DNA from: Phyllobates terribilis
Taxonomy: Eukaryota
DNA length: 64,000 bases
Assembly (NCBI RefSeq): GCF_046119375.1
Contig: NW_027362769.1
Coordinates: forward strand, 330,584,001 to 330,648,000
Direction of reading: 5' to 3'
Shown: positions 1 to 43,520 of the stretch, piece by piece
How the letters are laid out: the number at the start of each line of letters is the position of its first letter
Position numbering within the stretch: the stretch's first letter is position 1
The notes under the pieces: generated by a model
The model's database searches: none
Told to the model about the DNA's origin: nothing
The model's input: only the letters and a program-made list of their open reading frames with translations
Translations under genes and position numbers: made by a program

Positions 1-663
1 TCTTGATCTGAGAAGGCTAGAGACTACTTCTCATCTAAAGCTGTGTAGGGTCCAGGCTAGAATACTCCTCACCTAAAGCTCTGCAGTGCTCAGGCTAGAC
101 TACTCCTCACCTAAAGCTCTGTTGGGTCCAGGCTAGACTACTCCTCACCTAAAGCTCTGCAGTGCTCAGGCTAGACTACTCCTCACCTAAAGCTCTGTAG
201 GGTCCAGGCTAGTCTACTCCTCACCTAAAGCTCTGTAGGGTCCGGGCTAGACTACTCCTCACCTAAAGCTCTGTAGGGTCCAGGCTAGACTACTCCTCAC
301 CTAAAGCTCTGTAGGGTCCGGGCTAGACTACTCCTCACCTAAAGCTCTGTAGGGTCCGGGCTAGACTATTCCTCACCTATAGCTCTGTAGGGTCCAGCCT
401 AGACTACTCCTCACCTAAAGCTCTGTAGGGTCCAGGCTAGCCTACTTCTCACCTATAGCTCTGTAGGGTCCAGGCTAGACTACTCCTCACCTATAGCTCT
501 GTAGGGTCCAGCCTAGACTACTCCTCACCTATAGCTCTGTAGGGTCCGGGCTAGACTACTCCTCACCTAAAGCTCTGTAGGGTCCAGCCTAGACTACTCA
601 CCTATAGCTCTGTAGGGTCCAGCCTAGACTACTCCTCACCTATAGCTCTGTAGGGTCCAGCCT
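1..663. repeat. 38-bp tandem satellite, left part (array continues off the window start)
   Basis: Unit CTAGACTACTCCTCACCTAAAGCTCTGTAGGGTCCAGG repeated head to tail with point variants; the same array resumes in the same orientation at 15759. Confidence 0.95.
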
Positions 664-676
664 GGAAATTACTAAA

Positions 677-3600
677 ACCCTATGTGTCTTATTTGTCTAT
701 ACCTATGCCTATGGTAGATATTTGTCTGTAGCTATGCCTATGGTAGATTTTTTTGTCATATTTGTCTGTACCTATGCCTATGGTAGATTTTTTAGTCATA
801 TTTGTCTGTACCTATGCCTATGGTAGATATTTGTACCTATGCCTATGGTAGATTTTTGTACCTATGACTATGGTAGATTTTTTAGTCATATTTGTCTGTA
901 CCTATGCCTATGGTAGATATTTGTCTGTAGCTATGCCCATGGTAGATTTTTGTAGCTATGCCTATGGTAGATTTTTGTAGCTATGCCTATGGTAGATTTT
1001 TTTGTCATATTTGTCTATACCTATGCCTATGGTAGATTTTTGTACCTATGCCTATGGTAGATTTTTTAGTCTTATTTGTCTGTACCTATGCCTATGGTAG
1101 ATATTTGTACCTATGCCTATGGTAGATTTTTTAGTCATATTTGTCTGTACCTATGCCTATGGTAGATATTTGTACCTATGCCTATGGTAGATTTTTGTAC
1201 CTATGCCTATGGTAGATTTTTGTACCTATGCCTATGGTAGATTTTTTAGTCATATTTGTCTGTACCTATGCCTATGGTAGATTTTTGTAGCTATGCCTAT
1301 GGTAGATTTTTGTAGCTATGCCTATGGTAGATATTTTAGTCATATTTGTCTATACCTATGCCTATGGTAGATATTTGTCTGTAGCTATGCCTATGGTAGA
1401 TTTTTGTGTCATATTTGTCTGTACCTATGCCTATGGTAGATTTTTTAGTCATATTTGTCTGTACCTATGCCTATGGTAGATATTTGTCTGTAGCTATGCC
1501 TATGGTAGATTTTTGTAGCTATGCCTATGGTAGATTTTTTAGTCTTATTTGTCTATACCTATGCCTATGGTAGATATTTGTCTGTAGCTATGCCTATGGT
1601 AGATTTTTTAGTCATATTTGTCTGTACCTATGCCTATGGTAGATTTTTTAGTCATATTTGTCTGTACCTATGCCTATGGTAGATATTTGTACCTATGACT
1701 ATGGTAGATTTTTTAGTCATATTTGTCTGTACCTATGCCTATGGTAGATATTTGTCTGTAGCTATGCCCATGGTAGATTTTTGTAGCTATGCCTATGGTA
1801 GATTTTTGTACCTATGCCTATGGTAGATTTTTGTACCTATGCCTATGGTAGATTTTTTAGTCATATTTGTCTGTACCTATGCCTATGGTAGATATTTGTC
1901 TGTAGCTATGCCTATGGTAGATTTTTGTAGCTATGCCTATGGTAGATTTTTGTAGCTATGCCTATGGTAGATTTTTGTACCTATGCCTATGGTAGATTTT
2001 TTAGTCTTATTTGTCTGTAGCTATGCCTATGGTAGATTTTTGTAGCTATGCCTATGGTAGATTTTTGTAGCTATGCCTATGGTAGATTTTTTAGTCATAT
2101 TTGTCTGTACCTATGCCTATGGTAGATATTTGTCTGTAGCTATGCCTATGGTAGATTTTTGTAGCTATGCCTATGGTAGATTTTTGTAGCTATGCCTATG
2201 GTAGATTTTTGTACCTATGCCTATGGTAGATTTTTTAGTCTTATTTGTCTGTAGCTATGCCTATGGTAGATTTTTGTAGCTATGCCCATGGTAGATTTTT
2301 GTAGCTATGCCTATGGTAGATTTTTTTGTCATATTTGTCTATACCTATGCCTATGGTAGATTTTTGTACCTATGCCTATGGTAGATTTTTTAGTCTTATT
2401 TGTCTGTAGCTATGCCTATGGTAGATATTTGTCTGTAGCTATGCCTATGGTAGATTTTTGTAGCTATGCCTATGGTAGATTTTTTTGTCATATTTGTCTA
2501 TACCTATGCCTATGGTAGATTTTTGTACCTATGCCTATGGTAGATATTTTAGTCATATTTGTCTATACCTATGCCTATGGTAGATATTTGTCTGTAGCTA
2601 TGCCTATGGTAGATTTTTTTTGTCATATTTGTCTGTACCTATGCCTATGGTAGATATTTGTACCTATGCCTATGGTAGATTTTTTAGTCATATTTGTCTG
2701 TACCTATGCCTATGGTAGATATTTGTCTGTAGCTATGCCTATGGTAGATTTTTTAGTCATATTTGTCTGTACCTATGCCTATGGTAGATTTTTTAGTCAT
2801 ATTTGTCTGTACCTATGCCTATGGTAGATTTTTGTAGCTATGACTATGGTAGATTTTTGTGTCATATTTGTCTGTACCTATGCCTATGGTAGATTTTTTA
2901 GTCATATTTGTCTGTACCTATGCCTATGGTAGATATTTGTCTGTAGCTATGCCTATGGTAGATTTTTGTACCTATGCCTATGGTAGATTTTTTAGTCTTA
3001 TTTGTCTATACCTATGCCTATGGTAGATATTTGTCTGTAGCTATGCCTATGGTAGATTTTTTAGTCATATTTGTCTGTACCTATGCCTATGGTAGATTTT
3101 TTAGTCATATTTGTCTGTACCTATGCCTATGGTAGATTTTTGTACCTATGCCTATGGTAGATTTTTTAGTCATATTTGTCTGTACCTATGCCTATGGTAG
3201 ATATTTGTACCTATGACTATGGTAGATTTTTTAGTCATATTTGTCTGTACCTATGCCTATGGTAGATTTTTGTACCTATGCCTATGGTAGATTTTTTAGT
3301 CTTATTTGTCTGTAGCTATGCCTATGGTAGATTTTTGTAGCTATGCCTATGGTAGATTTTTTAGTCATATTTGTCTGTACCTATGCCTATGGTAGATATT
3401 TGTCTGTAGCTATGCCTATGGTAGATTTTTGTACCTATGCCTATGGTAGATTTTTTAGTCATATTTGTCTGTACCTATGCCTATGGTAGATTTTTGTACC
3501 TATGCCTATGGTAGATTTTTTAGTCATATTTGTCTGTACCTATGCCTATGGTAGATATTTGTACCTATGACTATGGTAGATTTTTTAGTCATATTTGTCT

Positions 3601-6600
3601 GTACCTATGCCTATGGTAGATTTTTGTACCTATGCCTATGGTAGATTTTTTAGTCTTATTTGTCTGTAGCTATGCCTATGGTAGATTTTTGTACCTATGC
3701 CTATGGTAGATTTTTTAGTCTTATTTGTCTGTAGCTATGCCTATGGTAGATTTTTGTGCCTATGGTAGATTTTTTTAGTCATATTTGTCTGTACCTATGC
3801 CTATGGTAGATTTTTGTGCCTATGGTAGATTTTTTTAGTCATATTTGTCTGTACCTATGCCCATGGTAGATTTTTTAGTCATATTTGTCTATACCTATGC
3901 CTATGGTAGATTTTTTAGTCATATTTGTCTGTACCTATGCCTATGGTAGATTTTTTACAGTTACAACTCGCTTCTCTGTGTTCCTGAGCTGAGAGAGGCA
4001 GGGGGATGTTTTGAGAGTGAGATAAGGCTGGAAGCTAATTTTAATATTGTCTACCTATGTGTCTTATTTGTCTATACCTATGCCTATGGTAGATATTTGT
4101 CTGTAGCTATGCCTATGGTAGATTTTTTTGTCATATTTGTCTGTACCTATGCCTATGGTAGATTTTTTAGTCATATTTGTCTGTACCTATGCCTATGGTA
4201 GATATTTGTACCTATGACTATGGTAGATTTTTTAGTCATATTTGTCTGTACCTATGCCTATGGTAGATATTTGTCTGTAGCTATGCCCATGGTAAATTTT
4301 TGTAGCTATGCCTATGGTAGATTTTTTTGTCATATTTGTCTATACCTATGCCTATGGTAGATTTTTGTACCTATGCCTATGGTAGATTTTTTAGTCTTAT
4401 TTGTCTGTAGCTATGCCTATGGTAGATTTTTGTACCTATGCCTATGGTAGATATTTTAGTCATATTTGTCTATACCTATGCCTATGGTAGATATTTGTAC
4501 CTATGCCTATGGTAGATTTTTTAGTCATATTTGTCTGTACCTATGCCTATGGTAGATATTTGTACCTATGACTATGGTAGATTTTTTAGTCATATTTGTC
4601 TGTACCTATGCCTATGGTAGATATTTGTCTGTAGCTATGCCCATGGTAGATTTTTGTAGCTATGCCTATGGTAGATTTTTGTACCTATGCCTATGGTAGA
4701 TTTTTGTACCTATGCCTATGGTAGATTTTTTAGTCATATTTGTCTGTACCTATGCCTATGGTAGATATTTGTCTGTAGCTATGCCTATGGTAGATTTTTG
4801 TAGCTATGCCTATGGTAGATTTTTGTACCTATGCCTATGGTAGATTTTTTAGTCTTATTTGTCTGTAGCTATGCCTATGGTAGATTTTTGTAGCTATGCC
4901 TATGGTAGATTTTTGTAGCTATGCCTATGGTAGATTTTTGTAGCTATGCCTATGGTAGATTTTTGTAGCTATGCCTATGGTAGATTTTTTAGTCATATTT
5001 GTCTGTAGCTATGCCTATGGTAGATATTTGTCTGTAGCTATGCCTATGGTAGATTTTTGTAGCTATGCCTATGGTAGATTTTTGTACCTATGCCTATGGT
5101 AGATTTTTTAGTCATATTTGTCTGTACCTATGCCTATGGTAGATATTTGTCTGTAGCTATGCCTATGGTAGATTTTTGTAGCTATGCCCATGGTAGATTT
5201 TTGTAGCTATGCCTATGGTAGATTTTTTTGTCATATTTGTCTATACCTATGCCTATGGTAGATTTTTGTACCTATGCCTATGGTAGATTTTTTAGTCTTA
5301 TTTGTCTGTAGCTATGCCTATGGTAGATTTTTGTACCTATGCCTATGGTAGATATTTTAGTCATATTTGTCTATACCTATGCCTATGGTAGATATTTGTC
5401 TGTAGCTATGCCTATGGTAGATTTTTTTTGTCATATTTGTCTGTACCTATGCCTATGGTAGATATTTGTACCTATGCCTATGGTAGATTTTTTAGTCATA
5501 TTTGTCTGTACCTATGCCTATGGTAGATATTTGTCTGTGCCTATGCCTATGGTAGATTTTTTAGTCTTATTTGTCTGTACCTATGCCTATGGTAGATTTT
5601 TGTAGCTATGCCTATGGTAGATTTTTGTAGCTATGCCTATGGTAGATTTTTGTAGCTATGCCTATGGTAGATATTTTAGTCATATTTGTCTGTACCTATG
5701 CCTATGGTAGATATTTGTCTGTAGCTATGCCTATGGTAGATTTTTGTAGCTATGACTATGGTAGATTTTTGTGTCATATTTGTCTGTACCTATGCCTATG
5801 GTAGATTTTTTAGTCATATTTGTCTGTACCTATGCCTATGGTAGATATTTGTCTGTAGCTATGCCTATGGTAGATTTTTTAGTCTTATTTGTCTATACCT
5901 ATGCCTATGGTAGATATTTGTCTGTAGCTATGGCTATGGTAGATTTTTTAGTCATATTTGTCTGTACCTATGCCTATGGTAGATTTTTTAGTCATATTTG
6001 TCTGTACCTATGCCTATGGTAGATTTTTGTACCTATGCCTATGGTAGATTTTTTAGTCATATTTGTCTGTACCTATGCCTATGGTAGATATTTGTACCTA
6101 TGACTATGGTAGATTTTTTAGTCATATTTGTCTGTACCTATGCCTATGGTAGATTTTTGTACCTATGCCTATGGTAGATTTTTTAGTCTTATTTGTCTGT
6201 AGCTATGCCTATGGTAGATTTTTGTACCTATGCCTATGGTAGATTTTTTAGTCTTATTTGTCTGTAGCTATGCCTATGGTAGATTTTTGTAGCTATGCCT
6301 ATGGTAGATTTTTTAGTCATATTTGTCTGTACCTATGCCTATGGTAGATATTTGTCTGTAGCTATGCCTATGGTAGATTTTTGTAGCTATGCCTATGGTA
6401 GATTTTTGTACCTATGCCTATGGTAGATTTTTTAGTCTTATTTGTCTGTAGCTATGCCTATGGTAGATTTTTGTACCTATGCCTATGGTAGATTTTTTTA
6501 GTCATATTTGTCTGTACCTATGCCCATGGTAGATTTTTTAGTCATATTTGTCTATACCTATGCCTATGGTAGATTTTTTAGTCATATTTGTCTGTACCTA

Positions 6601-6620
6601 TGCCTATGGTAGATTTTTTA
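677..6620. repeat. Satellite expanded from the left TIR: 25/29/40-bp variants around core CTATGCCTATGGTAGAT
   Basis: Short (..GATTTTTGTA), medium (..GATATTTGTCTGTA) and long (..GATTTTTTAGTCATATTTGTCTGTA) monomers are intermixed. A unique ~100-bp spacer occurs twice (about 3957-4056 and 6620-6719), marking a kb-scale duplication. Confidence 0.95.
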
Positions 6621-6867
6621 CAGTTACAACTCGCTTCTCTGTGTTCCTGAGCTGAGAGAGGCAGGGGGATGTTTTGAGAGTGAGATAAGGCTGGAAGCTA
6701 ATTTTAATATTGTCTACCTTGAGATAGTTTATAAACCCTCCTCTCACACATCCAGTACCCTAGCAACCACAGAATGCAGAGTAAGTGGACATGCTAGCTG
6801 GGGCATATCTTACAGAAGTCAAGCTGCAACACCAGGCTCTCCCATCATCACTTTGGCAAGTATTACG

Positions 6868-7330
6868 AATAACAGTTTTAAGCTCCGTTTTTTTATTGGA
6901 ATAAGTTCATATTAGTGACAGAAAGTTACTTTCCCAGTTTCATTAAGATTTTTTTAGGGATTCAGTCTTTATGTTCTGCCATATTCTTCCATACCTATGC
7001 CTAGTGTGGTTATCATGGCTGGAAACTGAATAACAGTTTTAAGCTCCATTATTGTATTGGAATAAGTTCATATTAGTGACAGAAAGTTACTTTCCCAGGT
7101 TCATCAAGATCTTTTTAGGGATTCAGTCTTTTTGTGCCGCCATATTCTTCCATACCTATGCCTAGTGTGTTATCATGGTTGGAAACTGAATAACAGTTTT
7201 AAGCTCCGTTTTTTTTATTGGAATAAGTTCATATTAGTACAACAAGGTTATTTTTCCAGTTTCATCAAGATCTTTTTAGGGATTCAGTCTTTATTTGAAT
7301 TATAAAGTTGCTATATAGGAATGTATGGGT
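6868..7330. repeat. Left subterminal ~160-bp tandem repeat (about 3 copies) of the MULE
   Basis: AATAACAGTTTTAAGCTCC starts at 6868, 7029 and 7189. The units contain CATACCTATGCCTAG, the same core as the TIR satellite. Inverted copies occur at about 15265-15575. Confidence 0.9.
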
Positions 7331-8126
7331 GTTCAACTTTCTTCCCAAAATAATCTCTGCTAATGGTAACCAGATCTTCCATCTAAATATAGCACAGTAA
7401 ATGTTATCTGTCCTCGATCTAGCTTGCCATATAATAAATGGCTCCATACAATGTAGCTGCCCCTGCTGAAGTCAAGTTTTCACTTCCAGGATGGATGATA
7501 ATTCTTCGGTTTGGGTTTGTTGGGGATAAAACTTGGAGTACTGTACTGGTAGCTGCAAACGTTGGACCTCTGCACGGTCTGTCAAATTTTCTTCACGCCA
7601 CCAGTAGGAAAGTGCTTTAAGCCGGCATGGTTGTTGACCTTACCATACTCACCCTACTGTCTTATACGTTGTCTATTACTATTTACAGTTAAAATGTAGG
7701 AATATACAGTATCATAACTTATCTAAAGTGCTTCTATTTTAAAGGATATACCTTGTTACTGTCTCATACAAAGTATTTGTGGATATGGTGTAAAAGTTAC
7801 CAACTTTTATGACATTTCAGAGGATACAATTTCACTAATTTGGAGCAAAGGTCCACTGGACAACCATGCTACATCGGATATTTCTCTTCAGTATGCTTAC
7901 ATTCAAGAACTAACAAAAAGGTAGTATGAAGTTGTGTGATTTATGGCTTAGCTTCTTTTGATACTAATCTTTAGTGTACATTTACTTAAATTTTAAAATT
8001 GCTTTTCATTTCAGACTAAATTTTATTTTATTGAATCAGCTTTGGCTTCAAGTAGTTTTGAATAATTTAAGATTTTTAATTTTGCATTAAATAATTAAAT
8101 TAAAATATATAAATATTTTTATTTAA

Positions 8127-9120
8127 AGAGGAACTATCAATTGTTTTAAATTAATATTTTTATTATATAAAAAAATTTGAATAGGTCTTTAATATTATTT
8201 TTTTTAGTTTTTGTAACTATTCCTACACTAAACTGTTCCTAAGGCTATGTTCACACGCTGCGTTTTTTGCTGCGTTTTTTCATGCTAATTATGCTAATTT
8301 AAAGCAGCAAAGTACAGTACCAGCAAAGTCTATGAGATTTGCAGAATTGCTGTTCACACGCTTGTTCTTTTTTAACCTGCATTTCTTGTTTGTTTATTAG
8401 CTGCTTTTTTCAAAGAATGAACATGTCAATTCTCTGCTGCGTTTTTTGCTGCTTTGCTCCATAGGAAGCAATGATAAGGCAAAAACGCAGCAAAAAACGC
8501 AGCAAACCAACATTTTGCAAGCAGGTCAAAAGTTCATGGTTTTTCCTACGATTTTTGCCACCTAATTAGCATAAAAAACGCAGCAAAACGCACCATGTGA
8601 ACTTAGCCTAAATCACTCAGTTGCAAAAACGCAACCGACTGTCCCTTGCTAAGCTATCCTCCTAAACCGTTTTCACATTGAAGACGCTTTAGTAGAATGA
8701 ATGCGCGTGCACGCGTGTCCCCGGGCATCACATGAGTGCTTAGCTCGCTTCTCATGGGAAGCGAGCCAGCGCTCAGCTGTACTGAATGCATGGCAGCTGT
8801 GCCATCCCAGGCACGGCGCCATGTAATCTACTGCGCTGCAACCCCGGGAAACATCTCCCGAGGCTTCAGCGTATATATGCTCTGTATACCGCGATGTGCG
8901 GGCACGCCGGCGAGGACGCGCACACGTCATCAGCCGGCGTGCACGTGCCTCCCGGCATTTGTTCAGTTGCGGGACGGCCCAGAAGAGGAGCTTCGTGGGC
9001 CGACAGGAGGGTAATTAAGAAGTTTTTTATTTTTAAACCGGTCCAAATGGGTTCAGGGGGGAGGGGGGACCCAAAAAAAAAAAAAAGAAAAAAAAGGTAA
9101 ATGATAGTTAATCTTTAAAT
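8127..9120 (+). promoter_or_regulatory. Direct-repeat module A: CpG-rich putative promoter plus non-coding exon 1 of the transposase gene
   Basis: CpG-rich 8700-9010; donor GAGG|GTAATT at 9011; acceptor TTCTTTACAG| at 9196; ATG at 9209. Diverged direct copy at 13763-14150. Confidence 0.6.
8243..8608. mobile_element. PIF/Harbinger-type MITE
   Basis: TIRs GGCTATGTTCACAC / GTGAACTTAGCC; TAA TSD (8240-8242, 8609-8611); the empty site CCTAAATCACT is visible in module B near 13877. Confidence 0.9.
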
Positions 9121-9208
9121 GACTTCTTGTTTAGGTTTTTATATTGTTTGAATTTTTGTATCTTTTTTTCATAATTAAAAAAAAAGTTCTTTACAGGAAT
9201 TTTGAACA

Positions 9209-12200
9209 ATGGGCATCAAATCTTTAGTAAAGAAAAATAAAAGAGAATCTACAGTACCAGAGAATAAAGAAATACAAGGAACCCCAGGCAAAAATAAGGA
9301 TGTGACAAAATTAAGTTCAGAACAAACAGTTTCAGAGACAACTAATTCACATTCAACATCAAGATTTTTAGCATTGTATCTTCCATTTCACAATAAGAAG
9401 AAACCAAAAAGTGGTGGAAATGTAAAGAAATGTATATGCACTGAAGACTTATTGAAAGCTGCTACTAGACTGTTTGAAAGAAGTCCAAACACTGAAGTGA
9501 ATTCAAGCGTTAGTAGTGTGAGCTTCTGGTGCAAGCTTGGCGAAGAAGTAGCGCCAAAAACCAAAACGCACAGAAAAAAACTTATCCAAAATTATAGCTT
9601 AGCATGTAGAAACCTCTGGGACACAGATTTCAACTTTAGAGAATGTATTATGAAAGTCACCAACAAAGAAAAATGTGAAAAACAAGGAATCCCACGCCAA
9701 CCTCTTTTTTCTCGAACTATCAGTGAACAAAGTCTGCCTACATTAAAAGAACAAAAAACAGAACCGGAGAATGAAATGAAGAAGGATTATGATGACAGTG
9801 CTCTTGGTAAATACAACAAGATTGAAGCAGTGTCTGATGACATGGAATCATTCACTGGAGACAACAGTTACTGTTCAGAGAAAGGGCTACATGAAAGTAA
9901 TTCAATGGTAAGGATGAATTTGTGATTTATGAGCCCAAAAATATTACAAATAACAATGTTTACACAAAAATACTGACAAAATAACACCAACTGAAGCATT
10001 TGAGATTCTGAAGAAAGGTGATAAGTGTAGGGTGACCAATTTGCCACCACTTAATCCACAGCATGGTGATGTTTTACTTTTACAAAGAAGGAAAAGCAAG
10101 GGATTGCATAGCAGATCAATTGCAGTTTGATTACATCTCCAGGAACAAGTATACCTTTAAAGGGGAAACATGCTTCAAGGTTATATACAAGCCAAGACAC
10201 CCACCAGAAGAGGTATGTGAACTTCTTGAAAAGTACATTTTTAGCCTCGGTCAAACTGATAACAGTTGCAGGCTAACTCAGTACTTTGGAAATCCAAATA
10301 CAATGCACCTTAAAGCCCATGGTAATCGCAAACACTACAAGAACAAGATATTTTTTACTACTGCACCACCAATCATTAAAGAACAGAGGGAAAACTTATC
10401 ACAGCCACCCATGAAAGTTTATAAAGCACAGTGTACACGTTTCATACCTCCACAATATGAAGCTGCTTTAGGACCGCGTGATGTAAAGCAGGCACAAAAC
10501 AGTGCTATGAGAGAGTGTGTAAAGCGTTGTTTGTGCCAAGATGATGTTTATTCCATAGTTGAATTGGAGCGCTTGTTTGGTGGTTTTGTAAAGCAGCTAG
10601 ATGTCCTACATGATTTCTATTGTATCCTTGCAAAAGAAGAACTAATAGAAGAAGCGAATACATTTGCAAAACACAAGGACAGCAACTTCAGTTGTGACAC
10701 AACTTTCGAGTTTGGTCATTTTTATGTGACTACTGTTACATTTAACCACCCTGCTTTTCAAAATGCATGTGTAATTCCAATTTTCATATTGATGCACCAA
10801 AAGAAAGATGAAGGTACACACAGAAAGTTCTTCAATTTTATTTCTGAAAAGTGTCCAGCATTTAACAGCAACATGGTGAAAATCATTACTGACCGTGAAA
10901 AGGCAATTACAAACAGTATAGATGCACAGCTTCCCCAGGTTAAATGATTCCTGTGTTGGAACCACATGAGGAAAGATGTGCAATACTGAACGCAAAGGCA
11001 TGGTTGACAACAAATGGACAAATTAACATATGAAAGCTGTATTTACAGTTAAATGAACAGCAAGACACCAAACGAATATGTAAGTAAGTTAGAAGAACTT
11101 AGCCAACATTGGACAGAAGAATTCCTCACTTACTATAAGAAGCACCTGGAATCAGATATCCTCAATTACTGTGCAAGGTGGCTTTTAGAAGAACACATGT
11201 TCATAGAACCTTCAGGAATAACAACAAATCAAAGTGAGAGTTTTAATTCTGTGCTAAGAAGACATCATGATGGGAAAGAAATAAACATGGAAGGTTTTGT
11301 TCTGTCTATGTTTTACTTAACTTCTTACTACACGAAGGAAGTTCTGAGAGGGAGATGTGGACTGGGTAACTTCAACCTGAAAGGAGAGTTCTGAGCTCTA
11401 AACCCAGCAGATGTATCATTTCCTGAAGTACTGGTAACACTCGAAAGCTTGGCGGAATTTTTAAAGGAACAAAAACTTGTGATCACAAAAGAAAATGCAT
11501 GTAAAACAGGAAGCCATCTGCCAAGAAGAACAATGGCAGAAGGAATTCTCAATACACCAGGTGGTATTGTGTTGGTGCCACAGCAGAAAGTATTCCTCGT
11601 TAAAGGTTTTAAAAATGAATCTTACATTGTGCAACTTTTCCCAAAGACTTCTTGTTCATGTCCACAATCCAGACAGTGTCACCACATTATGGCAGTTCTG
11701 CTATCAGTGGGATTGGATCCAAGGGAAGAGACAGATGAAGGAAATCTAAGCAGGTTGTACAAAAAACAAAGGGGAAAAGGAAAAAGTGGACGGAAGTTCA
11801 CTTCTAAACCATGATTGACATCTCCAGCTGATGACTCAATCCAAAGCATGAATCGAAATAATGGAGACGAGGAGGCAACACTTACAACACAAGTTATGCC
11901 AGGATACAGTGCACGAACTGCAAAAATTGTTAAAATATCACCACCTGAACCATCCGTAGGTATGCCTAAACTTCATGTCATAACCACAAAAAAGGTTGTT
12001 CTGAATTACAAGCAGTGGTTCCAGGCACGGTAAAAGTTATCACAGTTACTGGTGATACAACTGTGACACTCCCAGAAGTAAGCAGTCAGTGGTGGTCAGA
12101 TGCAGATTTTACACCAACAGTGCAACCAGGACCTCAAAACTTTTGTACTGTTAATTGGATGACTAATTTATGTAATACAATTTGGGAAGCCAATTCAAGC

Positions 12201-12413
12201 ATCTGTTATGCAGGAGTGAATTGTTGCCAGCCTAATAGAAATGTGTGTGCAACAGAGGAAGATATGAAAATGGTTTTCTGTGACTTTGCATGCCAAGATT
12301 GGTACCACAAAGCACTAGTGAAGGACTATCTGATAAACAATTACCATCTATGTACAAATGCAGAAAATGTCAAAATGCTGAATAGGAGGTGTAAAGTACC
12401 TTTTCCTTGTTAG
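9209..12413 (+). pseudogene. Fragmented MULE (Mutator) transposase: N-terminal region, MULE DDE domain, SWIM zinc finger, C-terminal PHD-like remnant
   Basis: ORF pieces 9209-9925, 10063-10947, 11053-11394, 11449-11814 and 12015-12413. Motifs: AHGNRKH; CDTTF..YVT; TDREKAI; LCWNH just past the stop at 10947; SWIM CSCPQSRQCHHIMAV; CDFACQDWYH. Multiple stops and frameshifts. Confidence 0.85.
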
Positions 12414-12477
12414 TATGTAACATTATTAAGCAACTTATGGTTTAAGTGTAAACAGAATATGTTTGATTTCTTTTTAA

Positions 12478-13758
12478 CCCCTTACTTACCGGGGACGTAT
12501 TAGTACGCATATCTGCGTACCGCCGGTTCAGTGAGGGCTCCGGCGCTGAGCCCTCACTGAACCGAGCACATGTCAGCTGATTCTTACAGCTGACATGTGC
12601 CCGCAACAGCCGCGGGTGGAATCGCGATCCACCCGCGGCTGTTAACCAGTTAAATGCCGCTGTCAATCTCCGACAGCAGCATTTAACGCGCGCTTCCGGG
12701 TAGCGCGTCATAAGCCCCGCCCACCGGCGACCCCGTCACGTGATCGCGGGTCGCCGATGGGCGTGCATGACAACCCAGGGTCTGCAGCAGACGCCTGTGG
12801 TTGTCATGATCTTGTCGCTATGAGCGCCACCTAGTGGTCGGCGCTCATAGCACAGGACCATTTCTGCTGCATGCAGGGGATCTGCTGGTCCCCTGTATGT
12901 AGCAGAGGCGATCGGACAGTTGCTGCTTCTAGTCTCCTATGGAGACTATAGAAGCATGCAAAAAGTAAAAAAAAAAAAGTTTTTAAAAATATAAAAAAAA
13001 ATAAAAAAATATAAAAGTTTAAATCACCCCCCTTTCGCCCCATTCAAAATAAAATATATAAAAAAAAAAACCACATACACATATTTGGTATCGCCGCGTT
13101 CAGAATCGCCCGATCTATCAAAATAAAAAAAGAATTATTCCGATCGGTAAACGGCGTAGCGAGAAAAAAATTCTAAACGCCAGAATTACGTTTTTTGGTC
13201 GCCGCAAAATTGCAATAAAATGCAATAACGGGCGATCAAAACATCGGATCTACCCCAAATGTTATCAATAAAAACGTCAGCCTGGCACGCAAAAAATAAG
13301 CCATCAACCAGCCCCAGATCACGAAAAATGGAGACGCTACGGGTCTTAGAAAATGGCGCTATTTTTTTATTTTTTTTTTTACCAAATTTTGGAATTTTTT
13401 TTCACCACTTAAATATAAAAGAACCTATACATGTTTGGTGTCTATGAACTCGTAATGACCTGTAGAATAAGAAGGGCAGGTCAGTTTTAGCATTCAGTGA
13501 ACATGGTAAAAAAAATAAATAAAAAACAACTGGGGTATTGCACTTTTTTTGCAATTTTACCGCACTTGGAATTTTTTTCCTGTTTTCCCGTACAGGATAT
13601 GATAAAACTAGTAATGGCGTTGAAAAGTACAACTCGTCCCGCAAAAAATAAGCCCTCACATGGCCATATTGACCAAAAAATAAAAACGCTATGGCTCTGG
13701 GAACAAGGGGAGCAAAAACGAAAATGCAAAAACGAAAAATGCTCCGGGGCTTAAGGGG
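12478..13758. mobile_element. piggyBac-like non-autonomous element nested in the MULE
   Basis: TTAA|CCCCTTA ... TAAGGGG|TTAA (TTAA at 12474-12477 and 13759-13762); no transposase ORF. Confidence 0.85.
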
Positions 13759-13762
13759 TTAA

Positions 13763-14150
13763 AGAGTAACTATAAATTTTTTGTTATTAACATTTATTAT
13801 ATAAAAAAAAAAAATTTTTGAATAAGTCTTTTTTTTTTATTCTTACATTTTTCACACATCCTACAATAATCTGTCCCTAAATCACTAATTTGAAAACATG
13901 CAACTAACTGTCCCTCGCTAAACTATTCTCCTAAAGCGTATTCAGATTGAAGACGTTTTAGGAGAATGAATGCCCGAGGATGTGCGTGCACGCGCATTCC
14001 GGCAACTGTTCAGTTGCACTTTGGCCCAGAACAGGAGCTTCGTGGGCCGGCAGGAGGGTAAGTAAGAAGTTTTCTTATTTTAAACAGGTCCTAATGGGTT
14101 AAGGGGGTTCTAGAAAAAAAACCTTCAAACATGATAGTTACCCTTTAATA
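13763..14150 (+). repeat. Direct-repeat module B (diverged copy of 8127-9120, lacking the MITE and ~200 bp of the CpG core)
   Basis: Collinear blocks AGAGTAACTAT, CCTAAATCACT, TTGAAGACG..AGAATGAATGC, TTGTTCAGTTGC/CTGTTCAGTTGC, GGAGCTTCGTGGGCCG.CAGGAGG|GTAAGT (donor at 14058), ATGATAGTTA. Confidence 0.85.
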
Positions 14151-14451
14151 TGGTTTTGTCAAGTATTCGTAATCCATTCAGTTGTGTAAATGTTAACTTA
14201 AATATTTCTCCCAAATAAAATAGTTTTATGTAACATAGATGCTATGTTTTGATTTGTTTTAAATAAGGTTATGTCAATATTCGTAATCCATTCAGTCATG
14301 TAAGTGTTAACTTAATTATTTTTCTGTAATGAAAATACTTTTATGTAACTTATACTTCATCATCTAATCTAGGATTCAGCATTCATTTCAAATCTACAGT
14401 AACATATATGTGACTTGTGTTTACAACAGACAGCTTAATTTCGCCTCATAA

Positions 14452-14757
14452 GGGCTTGTTCACACAGGCAGCGTTTTCGCGTTTTTTCAGCGCATCCATT
14501 CTGCGCTGAAAAAACGAGCCTATTGTTGTCAATGGGCTAGTGCAGACACTCCGCTTTTTCTGCGCATCGAACGGATGCGCAGAAAAAAGCGACAGCATGT
14601 CCGTTTTTGCCGCGCAGAACGGACTGCCGCCGCCTATTTGAATGACTGTGTGCGCTAAAAACCAGCGACACAGTAATTCAGCATGCACTTCTTATGCTTG
14701 TGCGCATAAAAAGCGCATGCACATAACGGAGCCGAAACGGCCAGTGTGAGTGAGCCC
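14452..14757. mobile_element. PIF/Harbinger-type MITE
   Basis: Ends GGGCTTGTTCACAC / GTGTGAGTGAGCCC with TWA flanks. Confidence 0.7.
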
Positions 14758-14899
14758 TTAATTTTTTTTTTAAATACAGTAAACTGTATATTTTATTTTA
14801 TCAGTAAACTGAGATCAGAGAGATTAAGAAAACCATTTAAAAAAACTGTGCCATTGCCATAGTCTTGTGTGAAAATCAAACAAACAAAAACAAGGGCTT

Positions 14900-15758
14900 T
14901 AAGGCAAAATTTTTCGATAAAGATCTACTTAGGGATTCACTGTTTATTTGAAATGTAAAGTTATTATATAGGAATGCATGAATTAACATTGTTGAAAACA
15001 GAATTACATTTTTAAGCTCTGTTTTTCTTGTTGGAATAAGTTCATATTAATGACAAACTTATTTTCAGAGTTGCATCAAGATCTTATTAGGGATTCAGTG
15101 CTTATTTGAAATTTAAAGTTACTATATAGAAATGTATGGGTTTGCCTTGTTGAAAACACAATTACAGTTTTAACCTCTGCTAATTTATTTTTAAATAGAG
15201 TGAAGTGGAAAGGAAAAATACATTAAAAAAATTAAACTGTAAAAAAAAACTACCATAGGCCTAGGTATAGAAGAATATGGCGGTGCATAAAGACTGAATC
15301 CCTAAAAAGATCTTAATGAAACTTGGAAGATAACCTTGTTGTACTAATATTAATTTATTCCAATAAAAAAAAAAACAGAGCTTAAAACCGTTATTCAGTT
15401 TCCAACCATGATAACACACTAGGCATAGGTATGGAAGAATATGGCGGCGCATAAAGACTGAATCCCTAAAAAGATCTTAATGAAACTTGGAAGATAACCT
15501 TGTTGTACTAATATGAACTTATTCCAATAAAAAAAACAGAGCTTAAAACCGTTATTCAGTTTCCAAAAAAGTTAACCCCTACATTCATGTATAGCAACTT
15601 TATGTCAAATAAATACATAAGTAAATAAATTGGTTATTCTGCTTTAAATAGAGTGAAGTGGAAAGGAAAACTTAATTAAGAAAATGAAACTGTAAAAAAA
15701 AAAACTACCATAGGCATAGGTATAGATAAATGTGGCACATAGGGTTTTAGTATGCACC
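14900..15758. repeat. Right terminal/subterminal repeat of the MULE (locally palindromic)
   Basis: Direct copies of the ~160-bp unit at about 14925-15175 are followed by inverted copies at about 15265-15575. The satellite core occurs only in isolated copies (CTACCATAGGCCTAGG near 15250, CTACCATAGGCATAGG near 15706). Confidence 0.85.
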
Positions 15759-17110
15759 GTCTAGCCTAGACTACTCCTCACCTAAAGCTCTGTAGGGTCC
15801 AGGCTAGACTACTTCTCACCTAAAGCACTGTAGGGTCCAGGCTAGACTACTTCTCACCTAAAGCTCTGTAGGGTCCAGGCTAGACTACTCCTCACCTATA
15901 GCTCTGTAGTGCTCAGGCTAGACTACTTCTCACCTAAAGCTCTGTAGGGTCCAGCCTAGACTACTCCTCACCTATAGCTCTGTAGGGTCCAGGCTAGACT
16001 ACTCCTCACCTATAGCTCTGTAGTGCTCAGGCTAGACTACTCCTCACCTAAAACTCTGTAGGGTCCGGGATAGACTACTCCTCACCTAAAGCTCTTCAGT
16101 GCTCAGGCTAGACTACTTCTCACCTAAAGCTCTGTAGAGTCCAGGCTAGACTACTCCTCACCTATAGCTCTGTAGGGTCCAGGCTAGACTACTCCTCACC
16201 TATAGCTCTGTAGGGTCCAGGCTAGACTACTCCTCACCTAAAACTCTGTAGGGTCCGGGATAGACTACTCCTCACCTAAAGCTCTTCAGTGCTCAGGCTA
16301 GACTATTCCTCACCTATAGCTCTTCAGTGCTCAGGCTAGACTACGCCTCACCTAAAACTCTGTAGAGTCCAGGCTAGACTACTTCTCACCTAAAGCTCTG
16401 TAGGGTCCAGGCTAGACTACTCCTCACCTAAAGCTCTTCAGTGCTCAGGCTAGACTACTCCTCACCTAAAGCTCTGTAGAGTCCAGGCTAGACTACTCCT
16501 CACCTAAAACTCTGTAGGGTCCGGGATAGACTACTCCTCACCTAAAGCTCTTCAGTGCTCAGGCTAGACTATTCCTCACCTAAAGCTCTGTAGGGTCCGG
16601 GATAGACTACTCCTCACCTATAGCTCTTCAGTGCTCAGGCTAGACTATTCCTCACCTAAAGCTCTGTAGGGTCCGGGATAGACTACTCCTCACCTAAAGC
16701 TCTTCAGTGCTCAGGCTAGACTACTCCTCACCTAAAACTCTGTAGGGTCCAGGATAGACTACTCCTCACCTATAGCTCTTCAGTGCTCAGGCTAGACTAC
16801 TCCTCACCTATAGCTCTGTAGAGTCCAGGCTAGACTACTCCTCACCTAAAACTCTGTAGAGTCCAGGCTAGACTACTCCTCACCTATAGCTCTGTAGAGT
16901 CCAGGCTAGACTACTCCTCACCTAAAGCTCTGTAGGGTCCAGGCTAGACTACTCCTCACCTAAAGCTCTGTAGGGTCCAGGCTAGACTACTTCTCACCTA
17001 AAGCTCTGTAGGGTCCAGGCTAGACTACTTCTCACCTAAAGCTCTGTAGGGTCCAGGCTAGACTACTTCTCACCTAAAACTCTGTAGGGTCCGGGATAGA
17101 CTTCTCCTCA
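15759..17110. repeat. 38-bp tandem satellite, right part
   Basis: Same unit and orientation as 1-663, with TCTTCAGTGCTCAGG and GTCCGGGATAG variants; ends ~160 bp before the THUMPD1 ATG. Confidence 0.95.
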
Positions 17111-17268
17111 CTGCAATATACCAGTCTTAAGCCTCCATCAAACACGTGCACTGCCACTTCCTGTTAGGAACTTCCGCCCTGCGCTGGTAAAGCTCCGCCT
17201 CTTCGGGTGACGTCATCTTTCGCTGCCTCCGCTCTGTAAACCCGGTTATTTGTGTGCGTGCAGCCAGG
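17111..17268 (+). promoter_or_regulatory. THUMPD1 core promoter/5'UTR
   Basis: E-box CACGTG (~17143), ETS-like CACTTCCTG and AACTTCCG, CRE TGACGTCA (~17208), CpG-rich, directly upstream of the ATG. Confidence 0.65.
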
Positions 17269-42643: not shown

Positions 42644-43520
42644 CAACTAATAGATGGTGGCCCGATTCTAATGCATCGGGTATTCTAGAATAGGTATGCG
42701 GCCGACCGGGCGCAATCATCAGAGCGGTATTTAAATTTGGCGCCAAAATCGCTGATTGGTTGAGGCCGGCAACCGCGACCAATTAGCAAAGCGGTGTTAA
42801 AATTTGGCGCCTATATCGCAGATTGGTCACGGCCGCGACTAATCAGCAGAGCGTTATTTAAATTTGGCGCCAATAATGCTGGTTATTCGTGACCGGTAAC
42901 CGCCACCAATCAGCACAGCGGTGTTTAAGTTTGCCGCCCATCACGCGGATTGGTCGCGGTGGCCGGCCGCGACCAATCAGCGTCGTATTAGTGTGGGCCC
43001 GGGAGCGGCGCTGCCTGTGCGGCTCCTTCAGCTGCGAGAAGCCGGGAGATGAGCGGCTACTCGCAGCAGAAGCATCCCGACCGGCGGCGCCACTCCCCGG
43101 TCCTCCATTCACACTTGCTGTCGGGAGATCAGCGGGCCAAGCCGCTGATCTTCCGACATTAGCCGCATGGAGGTCAGCGGCGCCGGTCGGGGTAGTTGTG
43201 CTGCTAGCGCCGCTCATTTCCCGGCTGCATCGCCGCTGACCTATGTCCGCCAGATGAGCCGCTAACGGCCGCCATCTTTTTTCAGAAATCCCGTGGCGTT
43301 GATTGGCCGCTGCCGGACCAATGAGCGACGCGGGATTTCCTGGACNNNNNNNNNNNNNNNNNNNNNNNNNNNNNNNNNNNNNNNNNNNNNNNNNNNNNNN
43401 NNNNNNNNNNNNNNNNNNNNNNNNNNNNNNNNNNNNNNNNNNNNNNNNNNNNNNNNNNNNNNNNNNNNNNNNNNNNNNNNNNNNNNNNNNNNNNNNNNNN
43501 NNNNACAGACAAATACAATG
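42644..43520 (+). mobile_element. Probable non-autonomous Helitron/Helentron-like element with CCAAT-rich tandem core
   Basis: 5' subterminal hairpin CCCGAT-TCTAATGC-ATCGGG; ~60-70-bp CpG-rich repeats with CCAATCAG/CTGATTGG; the gap is flanked by GGAC..ACAGAC, suggesting a (GACA)n tract. Confidence 0.45.
43346..43504. other. Assembly gap (N run)
   Basis: 159 consecutive N. Confidence 1.

Follow-up and report, generated by a model that had tools for sequence, protein, structure and literature searches.

Transposons of the Mutator superfamily (MULE) are characterized by a target duplication of 8–11 bp (usually 9), a MULE-type DDE transposase with a SWIM zinc finger after the catalytic domain and, often, long terminal inverted repeats. 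The ends of Drosophila Foldback (FB) elements, as reportedly described by Potter in 1982, consist of short tandem repeats, and their two arms are said to be often unequal in length. Here we describe a Mutator-superfamily transposon of 15,095 bp at positions 664–15758 of a 64-kb stretch of the frog Phyllobates terribilis (the window; all positions refer to the whole of it, on the forward strand of contig NW_027362769.1). The element is inserted in a 38-bp satellite and carries a long array of a terminal motif at its left end. We consider it quite probable that a Foldback/Rehavkus-like Mutator inserted into the satellite and died, and that a box in its left end grew into a two-block minisatellite as a neutral by-product.

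Rehavkus elements are MULE-like, produce 9-bp duplications, encode a PHD finger and have a minisatellite by one terminal repeat (PMC6446971). The subterminal repeats of Tribolium Rehavkus (TfSat25/TCsat12) number from a few to 50 copies, and in one case an expansion that followed a species split produced an 80-kb satellite (bioRxiv 10.1101/2024.12.02.626372). In Tm1 of root-knot nematodes (Mutator/Foldback), the ends are unequal within one element through the number of 14-bp repeats, and the tip letters are non-inverted (PMC3169594). The ends of Galileo, a member of the P superfamily, change repeat number independently and their repeats contain secondary transposase-binding sites (PMC3573991), and the end repeats of Tetris in Drosophila virilis have supplied satellite building blocks (PMC4079207). 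Muta1 of Aedes aegypti is an animal Mutator with an 8–9-bp target duplication and a terminal motif plus 12-bp subterminal tandem repeats, and is a type 2 Foldback element.

The present locus resembles Rehavkus in its 9-bp target duplication, its one PHD-finger transposase gene, the minisatellite by one end and the subterminal tandem repeats that vary in number and are able to burst into long arrays, a likeness of structural description. However, Rehavkus is known from arthropods and annelids and has its minisatellite just before the 3' terminal repeat, whereas here the array follows directly after the 5' one (on the transposase strand), a SWIM domain is present and the host is a vertebrate. 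The resemblance to Drosophila FB/NOF lies in the repeat-built, unequal arms and, indirectly, in a homologous protein, P0002, whose nearest named cluster is the NOF-FB 120.7-kDa protein. Both arms of FB are built of repeats, whereas here only the left arm is expanded (182 motif copies versus 2) and the right keeps the basic layout. From its closest protein relatives the element differs in that no Ulp1 part was found in it. With Tm1 it shares 9-bp target duplications, composite ends with variable short tandem repeats and non-inverted tip letters (here positions 3–6), but Tm1 repeats are 13–15 bp long and modest in number and its transposase is Phantom-like. The repeat units of Galileo and Tetris are 150–220 bp long as against 25–40 bp here, and Galileo belongs to another superfamily. 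Muta1 is active and has nine symmetric repeats per end, whereas the present expansion is one-sided, 20-fold larger and carried by a dead copy.

Unequal, expanding tandem repeats in transposon ends are thus already known for Foldback, Rehavkus, Tm1 and Galileo, and are a family trait of Foldback/Rehavkus-type Mutators, a point that the preliminary description of the stretch did not recognise. What sets the present case apart is its degree (182 versus 2), the side of the gene on which the array lies, and its host. It adds a vertebrate case to a group of PHD-bearing NOF/Rehavkus-like Mutators described mainly from invertebrates. No new mechanism is revealed and no function of the array is indicated; rather, the seed, deletion derivatives, higher-order blocks and a kilobase-scale block duplication can be seen at a single locus, a fully decomposable example of the passage from end motif to tandem array, and related species show differing outcomes.

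Composition of the left-end array

Matches to CTATGCCTATGGTAGAT with at most two mismatches were counted across the window. Of 184 matches, 182 were located on the + strand between 703 and 6614, and only two on the − strand, at 15248–15264 (two mismatches) and 15703–15719 (one mismatch). The chance expectation was 0.01 matches, and the observed count was reached in none of 100 shuffles. Successive copies were spaced mostly by 25 bp (75 cases), 40 bp (72) and 29 bp (26), with the remainder at 41 bp (5) and 19 bp (2), apart from a single 143-bp gap. These figures bear out a preliminary description of the stretch, which had estimated by eye some 150–200 copies in 25-, 29- and 40-bp variants at the left end, with the reverse complement occurring at the right end in isolated copies only (here at 15248 and 15703). 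There were 29 distinct monomer sequences, and the five commonest made up 127 of the 182 monomers.

The amplified motif forms part of the terminal inverted repeat. The left terminal repeat (55 bp, 664–718, + strand) is identical at 46 of 55 positions to the reverse complement of the right one (55 bp, 15704–15758, − strand), where the single motif copy at 15703–15719 is found. Mismatches are confined to positions 3–6, 24–32 and 55 of the repeat. Two boxes are identical at both ends: box 1, at repeat positions 7–23 (TACTAAAACCCTATGTG; window 670–686), and box 2, at repeat positions 33–54 (TCTATACCTATGCCTATGGTAG; window 696–717), which is the amplified motif. The clustering of mismatches outside the boxes points to constraint, as a pointer rather than a test, the boxes having been drawn after the alignment was viewed.

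All monomers derive from the left terminal repeat, namely from its inner 40 bp. The 40-mer (TTTTTTAGTCATATTTGTCTGTACCTATGCCTATGGTAGA) corresponds to left terminal-repeat positions 24–55 plus eight letters, TTTTTTAG, which match the tail past the final monomer (TTTTTTACAG…), and this composition marks it as the product of duplicating that inner part in tandem. The shorter types can be derived from it by deletion: the 29-mer lacks the first 11 letters of the 40-mer, the common 25-mers lack 15 of its internal letters, a second 25-mer follows from the 29-mer by loss of 4 letters and the 19-mer from a 25-mer by loss of 6. Multi-monomer strings also recur, such as the 25+40 combination that gives a 65-bp period, 96% identical over 5963–6382 by Tandem Repeats Finder (TRF), which shows growth by blocks in addition to single units. 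The motif core is present in every monomer type and in a 22-bp variant from a related species (species B, below), while the spacers vary.

Two sub-arrays and a block duplication

The left-end repeats are divided into two sub-arrays. Sub-array A (682–3950, + strand) consists of 102 monomers of 25, 29 and 40 bp and is followed by a non-repeat spacer (3951–4056, + strand). Sub-array B (4057–6613, + strand) restarts at terminal-repeat position 19, continues with 80 monomers collinear with A and ends in a second copy of the spacer (6614–6719, + strand). They are treated as two sub-arrays rather than one because 3951–4064 is made up of non-repeat spacer and terminal-repeat restart. The stretches 3937–4056 and 6600–6719 are 100% identical. 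This identity of the spacers, combined with the restart at 4057, indicates that the block 682–4056 was duplicated in tandem as 4057–6719. The letters CCT are found at both duplication breakpoints (679–681 and 6717–6719) and constitute a microhomology.

Blocks A and B have rare monomer types in common, in the same order. Exact stretches of 160, 114, 332, 101, 227, 155, 293, 93 and 240 nt are shared between them with no substitutions within, and the collinear exact stretches of at least 90 nt account for 1715 nt of block B (2663 nt in all), as compared with 492–844 nt when monomer order was shuffled (20 trials). In a token alignment, the remaining differences between the blocks were gains and losses of whole monomers. 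The earlier suggestion that monomer order could record the history of expansion was therefore a fruitful one, as it was the decomposition into monomers that exposed the duplication of a whole block.

Insertion site

The element is flanked on both sides by the 38-bp satellite in the same orientation, with 16.9 copies on the left (21–663; TRF and sequence) and 35.6 copies on the right (15759–17111; TRF). Unit-to-unit matches are 87–91%, and the satellite totals at least 2 kb around the insertion. The left target site duplication, GTCCAGCCT (9 bp, 655–663), comprises the final nine letters of a complete satellite unit; the right one, GTCTAGCCT (15759–15767), is identical to it at 8 of 9 positions and is followed by the start of a satellite unit. 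Satellite phase is restored exactly once 664–15758 and one 9-bp copy are taken out, which shows that the inserted DNA is 15,095 bp long and that its target was duplicated over 9 bp. Readings of the ends as those of hAT (8-bp duplication) or Tc1/mariner (TA) elements were rejected, since it is a duplication of 9 bp that brings the satellite back into phase and since the transposase remains are of the MULE type. The Mutator hallmarks found in the element are the 9-bp target duplication (8/9), a MULE-type DDE transposase, a SWIM domain after the catalytic domain and terminal inverted repeats.

The target of the element was satellite DNA rather than a gene region. The array had initially been placed near a housekeeping promoter, and this part of the preliminary description finds no support: the element lies inside the 38-bp satellite, and the only CpG-rich patches nearby (8501–9000 and 12501–13000) are both internal to it and separated from the array by at least about 1.9 kb.

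Transposase remains

The body of the transposase was located at 10015–11796 (+ strand), with the MULE DDE region at about 10693–10941, the SWIM domain at 11623–11709 and in-frame stops at 10945, 11392 and 11812. In a tblastn comparison, residues 19–616 of P0002 aligned in a single frame across the three stops (E 2e-89, about 600 residues, 32% identity). The stops are regarded as mutations because homologues align ungapped in one frame straight across them, and introns as the cause of the stops were rejected for the same reason. The SWIM domain (PF04434) scored 27.5 bits relative to a Pfam cut-off of 19.6, while MULE (18.6 bits, cut-off 27.6) and PHD both fell under their Pfam cut-offs. A homologue search with a 294-residue piece gave none, which was attributed to the length window of that search and to low identity; a later full phmmer search gave 630 relatives, the best being 38% identical. 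The best full-length relatives combine MULE (PF10551, above cut-off), a Ulp1 protease (Peptidase_C48) and a PHD at the C-terminus, and often have a CG-1-like domain at the N-terminus. Only chance matches were returned by a sequence search of the PDB, and an exact look-up of the window's two longest open reading frames in public assemblies returned no match.

A C-terminal PHD finger region follows at 12123–12383 (+ strand), in a frame that differs from that of the transposase body, and the C-terminus of P0002 (adjoining and within the PHD) aligns to 12123–12308 (E 1.8e-6). No counterpart of Ulp1 was found when the C-terminal part of P0002 was aligned to the element, and about 230 residues are missing. 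Letters 12315 and 12317 of the window are absent in all four public runs, including one that is otherwise identical to the window. In the run version, which lacks both letters, a complete Cys4-His-Cys3 PHD finger is read and then a stop, and the window version is broken; the two extra letters may have arisen by private mutation or by a slip in the assembly.

Among ESM-Atlas clusters, the one nearest to P0002 is named '120.7 kDa protein in NOF-FB transposable element' (score 0.95), with Chordata as the commonest phylum, so that the link to NOF runs through P0002 (32% identical to the window frame) and not through an alignment to NOF itself. As judged from these remains, the element is a dead member of the Mutator superfamily, bearing a PHD finger and probably of the NOF/Foldback, Rehavkus-like kind.

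The transposase body is preceded by a 238-residue open reading frame (9209–9925) in another frame, which matches nothing in Pfam and lacks a counterpart among the aligned relatives. It could represent an extension of the N-terminus, a second gene or chance. A distant relative with the MULE-Ulp1-PHD arrangement (P0161) is encoded on a 12.5-kb contig (L001) that has, downstream of the gene, an array of 244 bp × 5.2 (9332–10600) and one of 32 bp × 4 (11744–11889). These arrays may be the end repeats of that element.

Subterminal repeats

The terminal repeats are accompanied by subterminal tandem repeats on both sides. On the left these are 161 bp × 2.7 (6867–7294, + strand) with one degenerate motif copy per unit, and on the right 164 bp × 1.9 (15256–15566, − strand), which are 86–95% identical to the left ones and inverted. 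The core TACCTATGCCTA occurs once per 161/164-bp unit, at 6992 and 7153 on the + strand and at 15256, 15420 and 15711 on the − strand. The baseline layout is therefore about three motif copies at each end, to which the left end adds about 180.

At the right end, the inner piece of the terminal repeat is present a second time, at 15190–15281 (− strand); this copy is 88% identical to 15643–15736 and includes the motif copy at 15248. The two pieces form a duplication with a 453-bp period. Subterminal-type units in the left-end orientation are also present (14912–15180, + strand) and form a local inverted repeat with 15256–15613. The right end is thus likewise rearranged, yet without motif expansion. 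The ends on both sides are composite and repeat-built, and they differ in their motif copies, 182 at the left versus 2 at the right.

Depth in public runs and comparison among species

Public runs were compared over 6350–12349, with X1 and X9 representing species label A, and X15 (species B) and X16 (species C) representing related species; all are short-read contigs, whose depth reflects copy number only roughly. The interior of the element was found at a depth of 17–20 in X1, in a single version about 1.5% off the window, and of 2.5–3.8 in X9, where it was mostly identical to the window. In X15 and X16 the interior depth was about 13–30 and about 10–17 respectively, at 2–4% off the window. 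The array bins 6350–6549 and 6550–6749 reached 255 and 992 in X1, 40 and 26 in X9, 210 and 107 in X15, and 0.75 and 40 in X16, that is, 13–50 times the interior in X1 and 9–13 times in X9. The 40-mer junction at 6574 had depths of 2691 in X1 (about 150 times the interior), 48.6 in X9, 252.1 in X15 and 138.9 in X16 (about 11 times the interior). This is consistent with a low-copy interior and a real multi-copy array in independent samples, on the order of the 182 assembled monomers.

These depths bear on whether the length of the array, or the A/B duplication, could be an assembly artefact that arose from a mis-assembled shorter repeat or from two joined haplotypes. The public runs consist of short-read contigs, and the window has an assembly gap elsewhere (43346–43504). 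However, array words reach about 13–150 times the interior depth in two independent label-A samples, on the order of the 182 assembled monomers, and A meets B at a clean, novel join that lies within the terminal repeat and has 3 nt of microhomology. Sub-arrays A and B are also not one array written twice, because many monomer gains and losses separate them. An artefact of this kind is very improbable.

The array differs sharply among the related species. Species B has a 22-bp monomer variant (three letters omitted at 6406) at a depth of 968 versus about 15 for its interior, and species C has almost no array. Because array depth is high in independent samples and the type and amount of array differ by species, the expansion is considered recent and lineage-specific. 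An exact scan of metagenome contigs for a 24-letter array word gave no match, which has little bearing on a frog genome. The run depths, a rough measure, gave no sign of the thousands of extra copies expected of a large free-standing satellite. The preliminary description had seen here a transposon end turning into satellite DNA after insertion; a one-sided minisatellite with much of its growth after insertion is retained from that view, but 'satellite' is too strong a word, as the depth matches a single array with tens to about 150 copies, and no evidence of free-standing arrays was found.

The 161-bp subterminal repeat (6867–7349) has a depth of 420–3600 in species B versus about 15 for the interior; the corresponding bins gave 27–88 in X1, 5.9–21 in X9 and 48–91 in X16. 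The unit is much amplified in species B, either in an array or through many small elements derived from it.

We also weighed whether a one-sided minisatellite was already aboard at insertion, as a family trait of Rehavkus, and has since changed only slightly in length. Rehavkus is partly defined by a minisatellite adjoining one terminal repeat, Tribolium copies have 2–50 repeats in their ends, and species B has an array too. Against this, sub-arrays A and B have exact blocks hundreds of nucleotides long in common, whereas the element differs by 1.5–4% between samples and species; the monomer type differs (25/29/40 bp in species A, 22 bp in species B) and species C has almost none; and the minisatellite lies 5' of the transposase gene here rather than before the 3' repeat. 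An array carried in at close to its present length is accordingly unlikely. Much of the growth is instead placed after the insertion, because the exact A/B blocks reach 332 nt while the element differs by about 1.5% within the same label and by 2–4% in the related species.

A more specific scenario is that one fixed, dead insertion is common to the three frog species and that the motif has grown separately at the orthologous locus, as 25/29/40-bp monomers with a block duplication in A, as a 22-bp monomer with amplification of the 161-bp unit in B, and hardly at all in C. We put this forward tentatively, as a possibility somewhat doubtful at present. If true, such separate growth would provide a datable single-locus series of minisatellite birth from a putative transposase-binding box in a vertebrate NOF/Rehavkus-type element.

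Proposed history of the array

To return to the reading of a dead element whose end grew into a minisatellite, the following order of events is proposed. A NOF/Foldback (Rehavkus-like) Mutator would have inserted into the 38-bp satellite and died later. Its ends would have carried a terminal-repeat box of 17–22 bp (…TACCTATGCCTATGGTAG…) that recurs once per subterminal repeat on both sides. This box is probably a transposase-binding site, as suggested by its place in both terminal repeats, its mirrored recurrence per subterminal unit and comparison with Muta1 and Galileo; the preliminary description had possibly seen in the array a dense set of such sites, a reasonable reading given the position and conservation of the motif. 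A left-end piece of 40 bp, made up of the box and a T-rich tail, would have been duplicated in tandem, and internal deletions would have yielded the 29-, 25- and 19-bp derivatives. Re-duplication of multi-monomer blocks would then have produced the 65-bp higher-order period. In the last step, the 3.4-kb block 682–4056 would have been duplicated in tandem at the CCT microhomology, after which the copies would have diverged through whole-monomer gains and losses. The origin of the monomers, the deletion derivatives, the blocks, the 3.4-kb duplication and the whole-monomer changes can be read directly in the sequence as assembled, and the underlying processes were presumably replication slippage and unequal sister-chromatid exchange.

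Because the transposase is dead and the element is low-copy, the array most likely represents a neutral by-product, a minisatellite able to seed a satellite rather than a working device. A working role could take the form of a sink or landing pad for the transposase or a host protein, of an insulator, or of a regulatory array acting on a nearby promoter. In line with such a role, the motif core is kept in all monomer types and in the 22-bp variant of species B while spacers vary, and tandem repeats in transposon ends have been reported as secondary binding sites able to raise excision. Conservation of the core is, however, also expected from plain tandem copying; the transposase is dead (three stops and a frame change), the interior is low-copy, the locus lies in a satellite and does not adjoin a gene promoter, and species C manages without the array. 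A working device is therefore highly improbable.

Several points weigh against the proposed history of a minisatellite grown from a dead end. The exact length of the array and the 4056/4057 junction rest on the assembly, the runs being short-read contigs whose depth is a rough guide to copy number. Orthology in species B and C is drawn from low depth and similarity rather than from the insertion site. The difference between the left and right terminal repeats (84% identity) may in part be a family feature rather than the result of decay alone, and a short array may predate the insertion, as Rehavkus has been described with a minisatellite already in the mobile element. Finally, binding of the motif by the transposase is presumed from its position and recurrence and by analogy.

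Nested insert and interior repeats

A small high-copy element is nested at 8238–8606, with a depth in the thousands in all runs. It is skipped in X15 (species B) and X16 (species C), where 8237 is joined to 8607, and is present in X1. Because the contigs of the related species skip 8238–8606 and a second label-A sample has it, the nested element is considered a younger insertion into the Mutator element. Direct repeats at 8607–9060 and 13876–14107, about 85% identical, bracket the transposase gene, and the first copy has a 232-bp insert.

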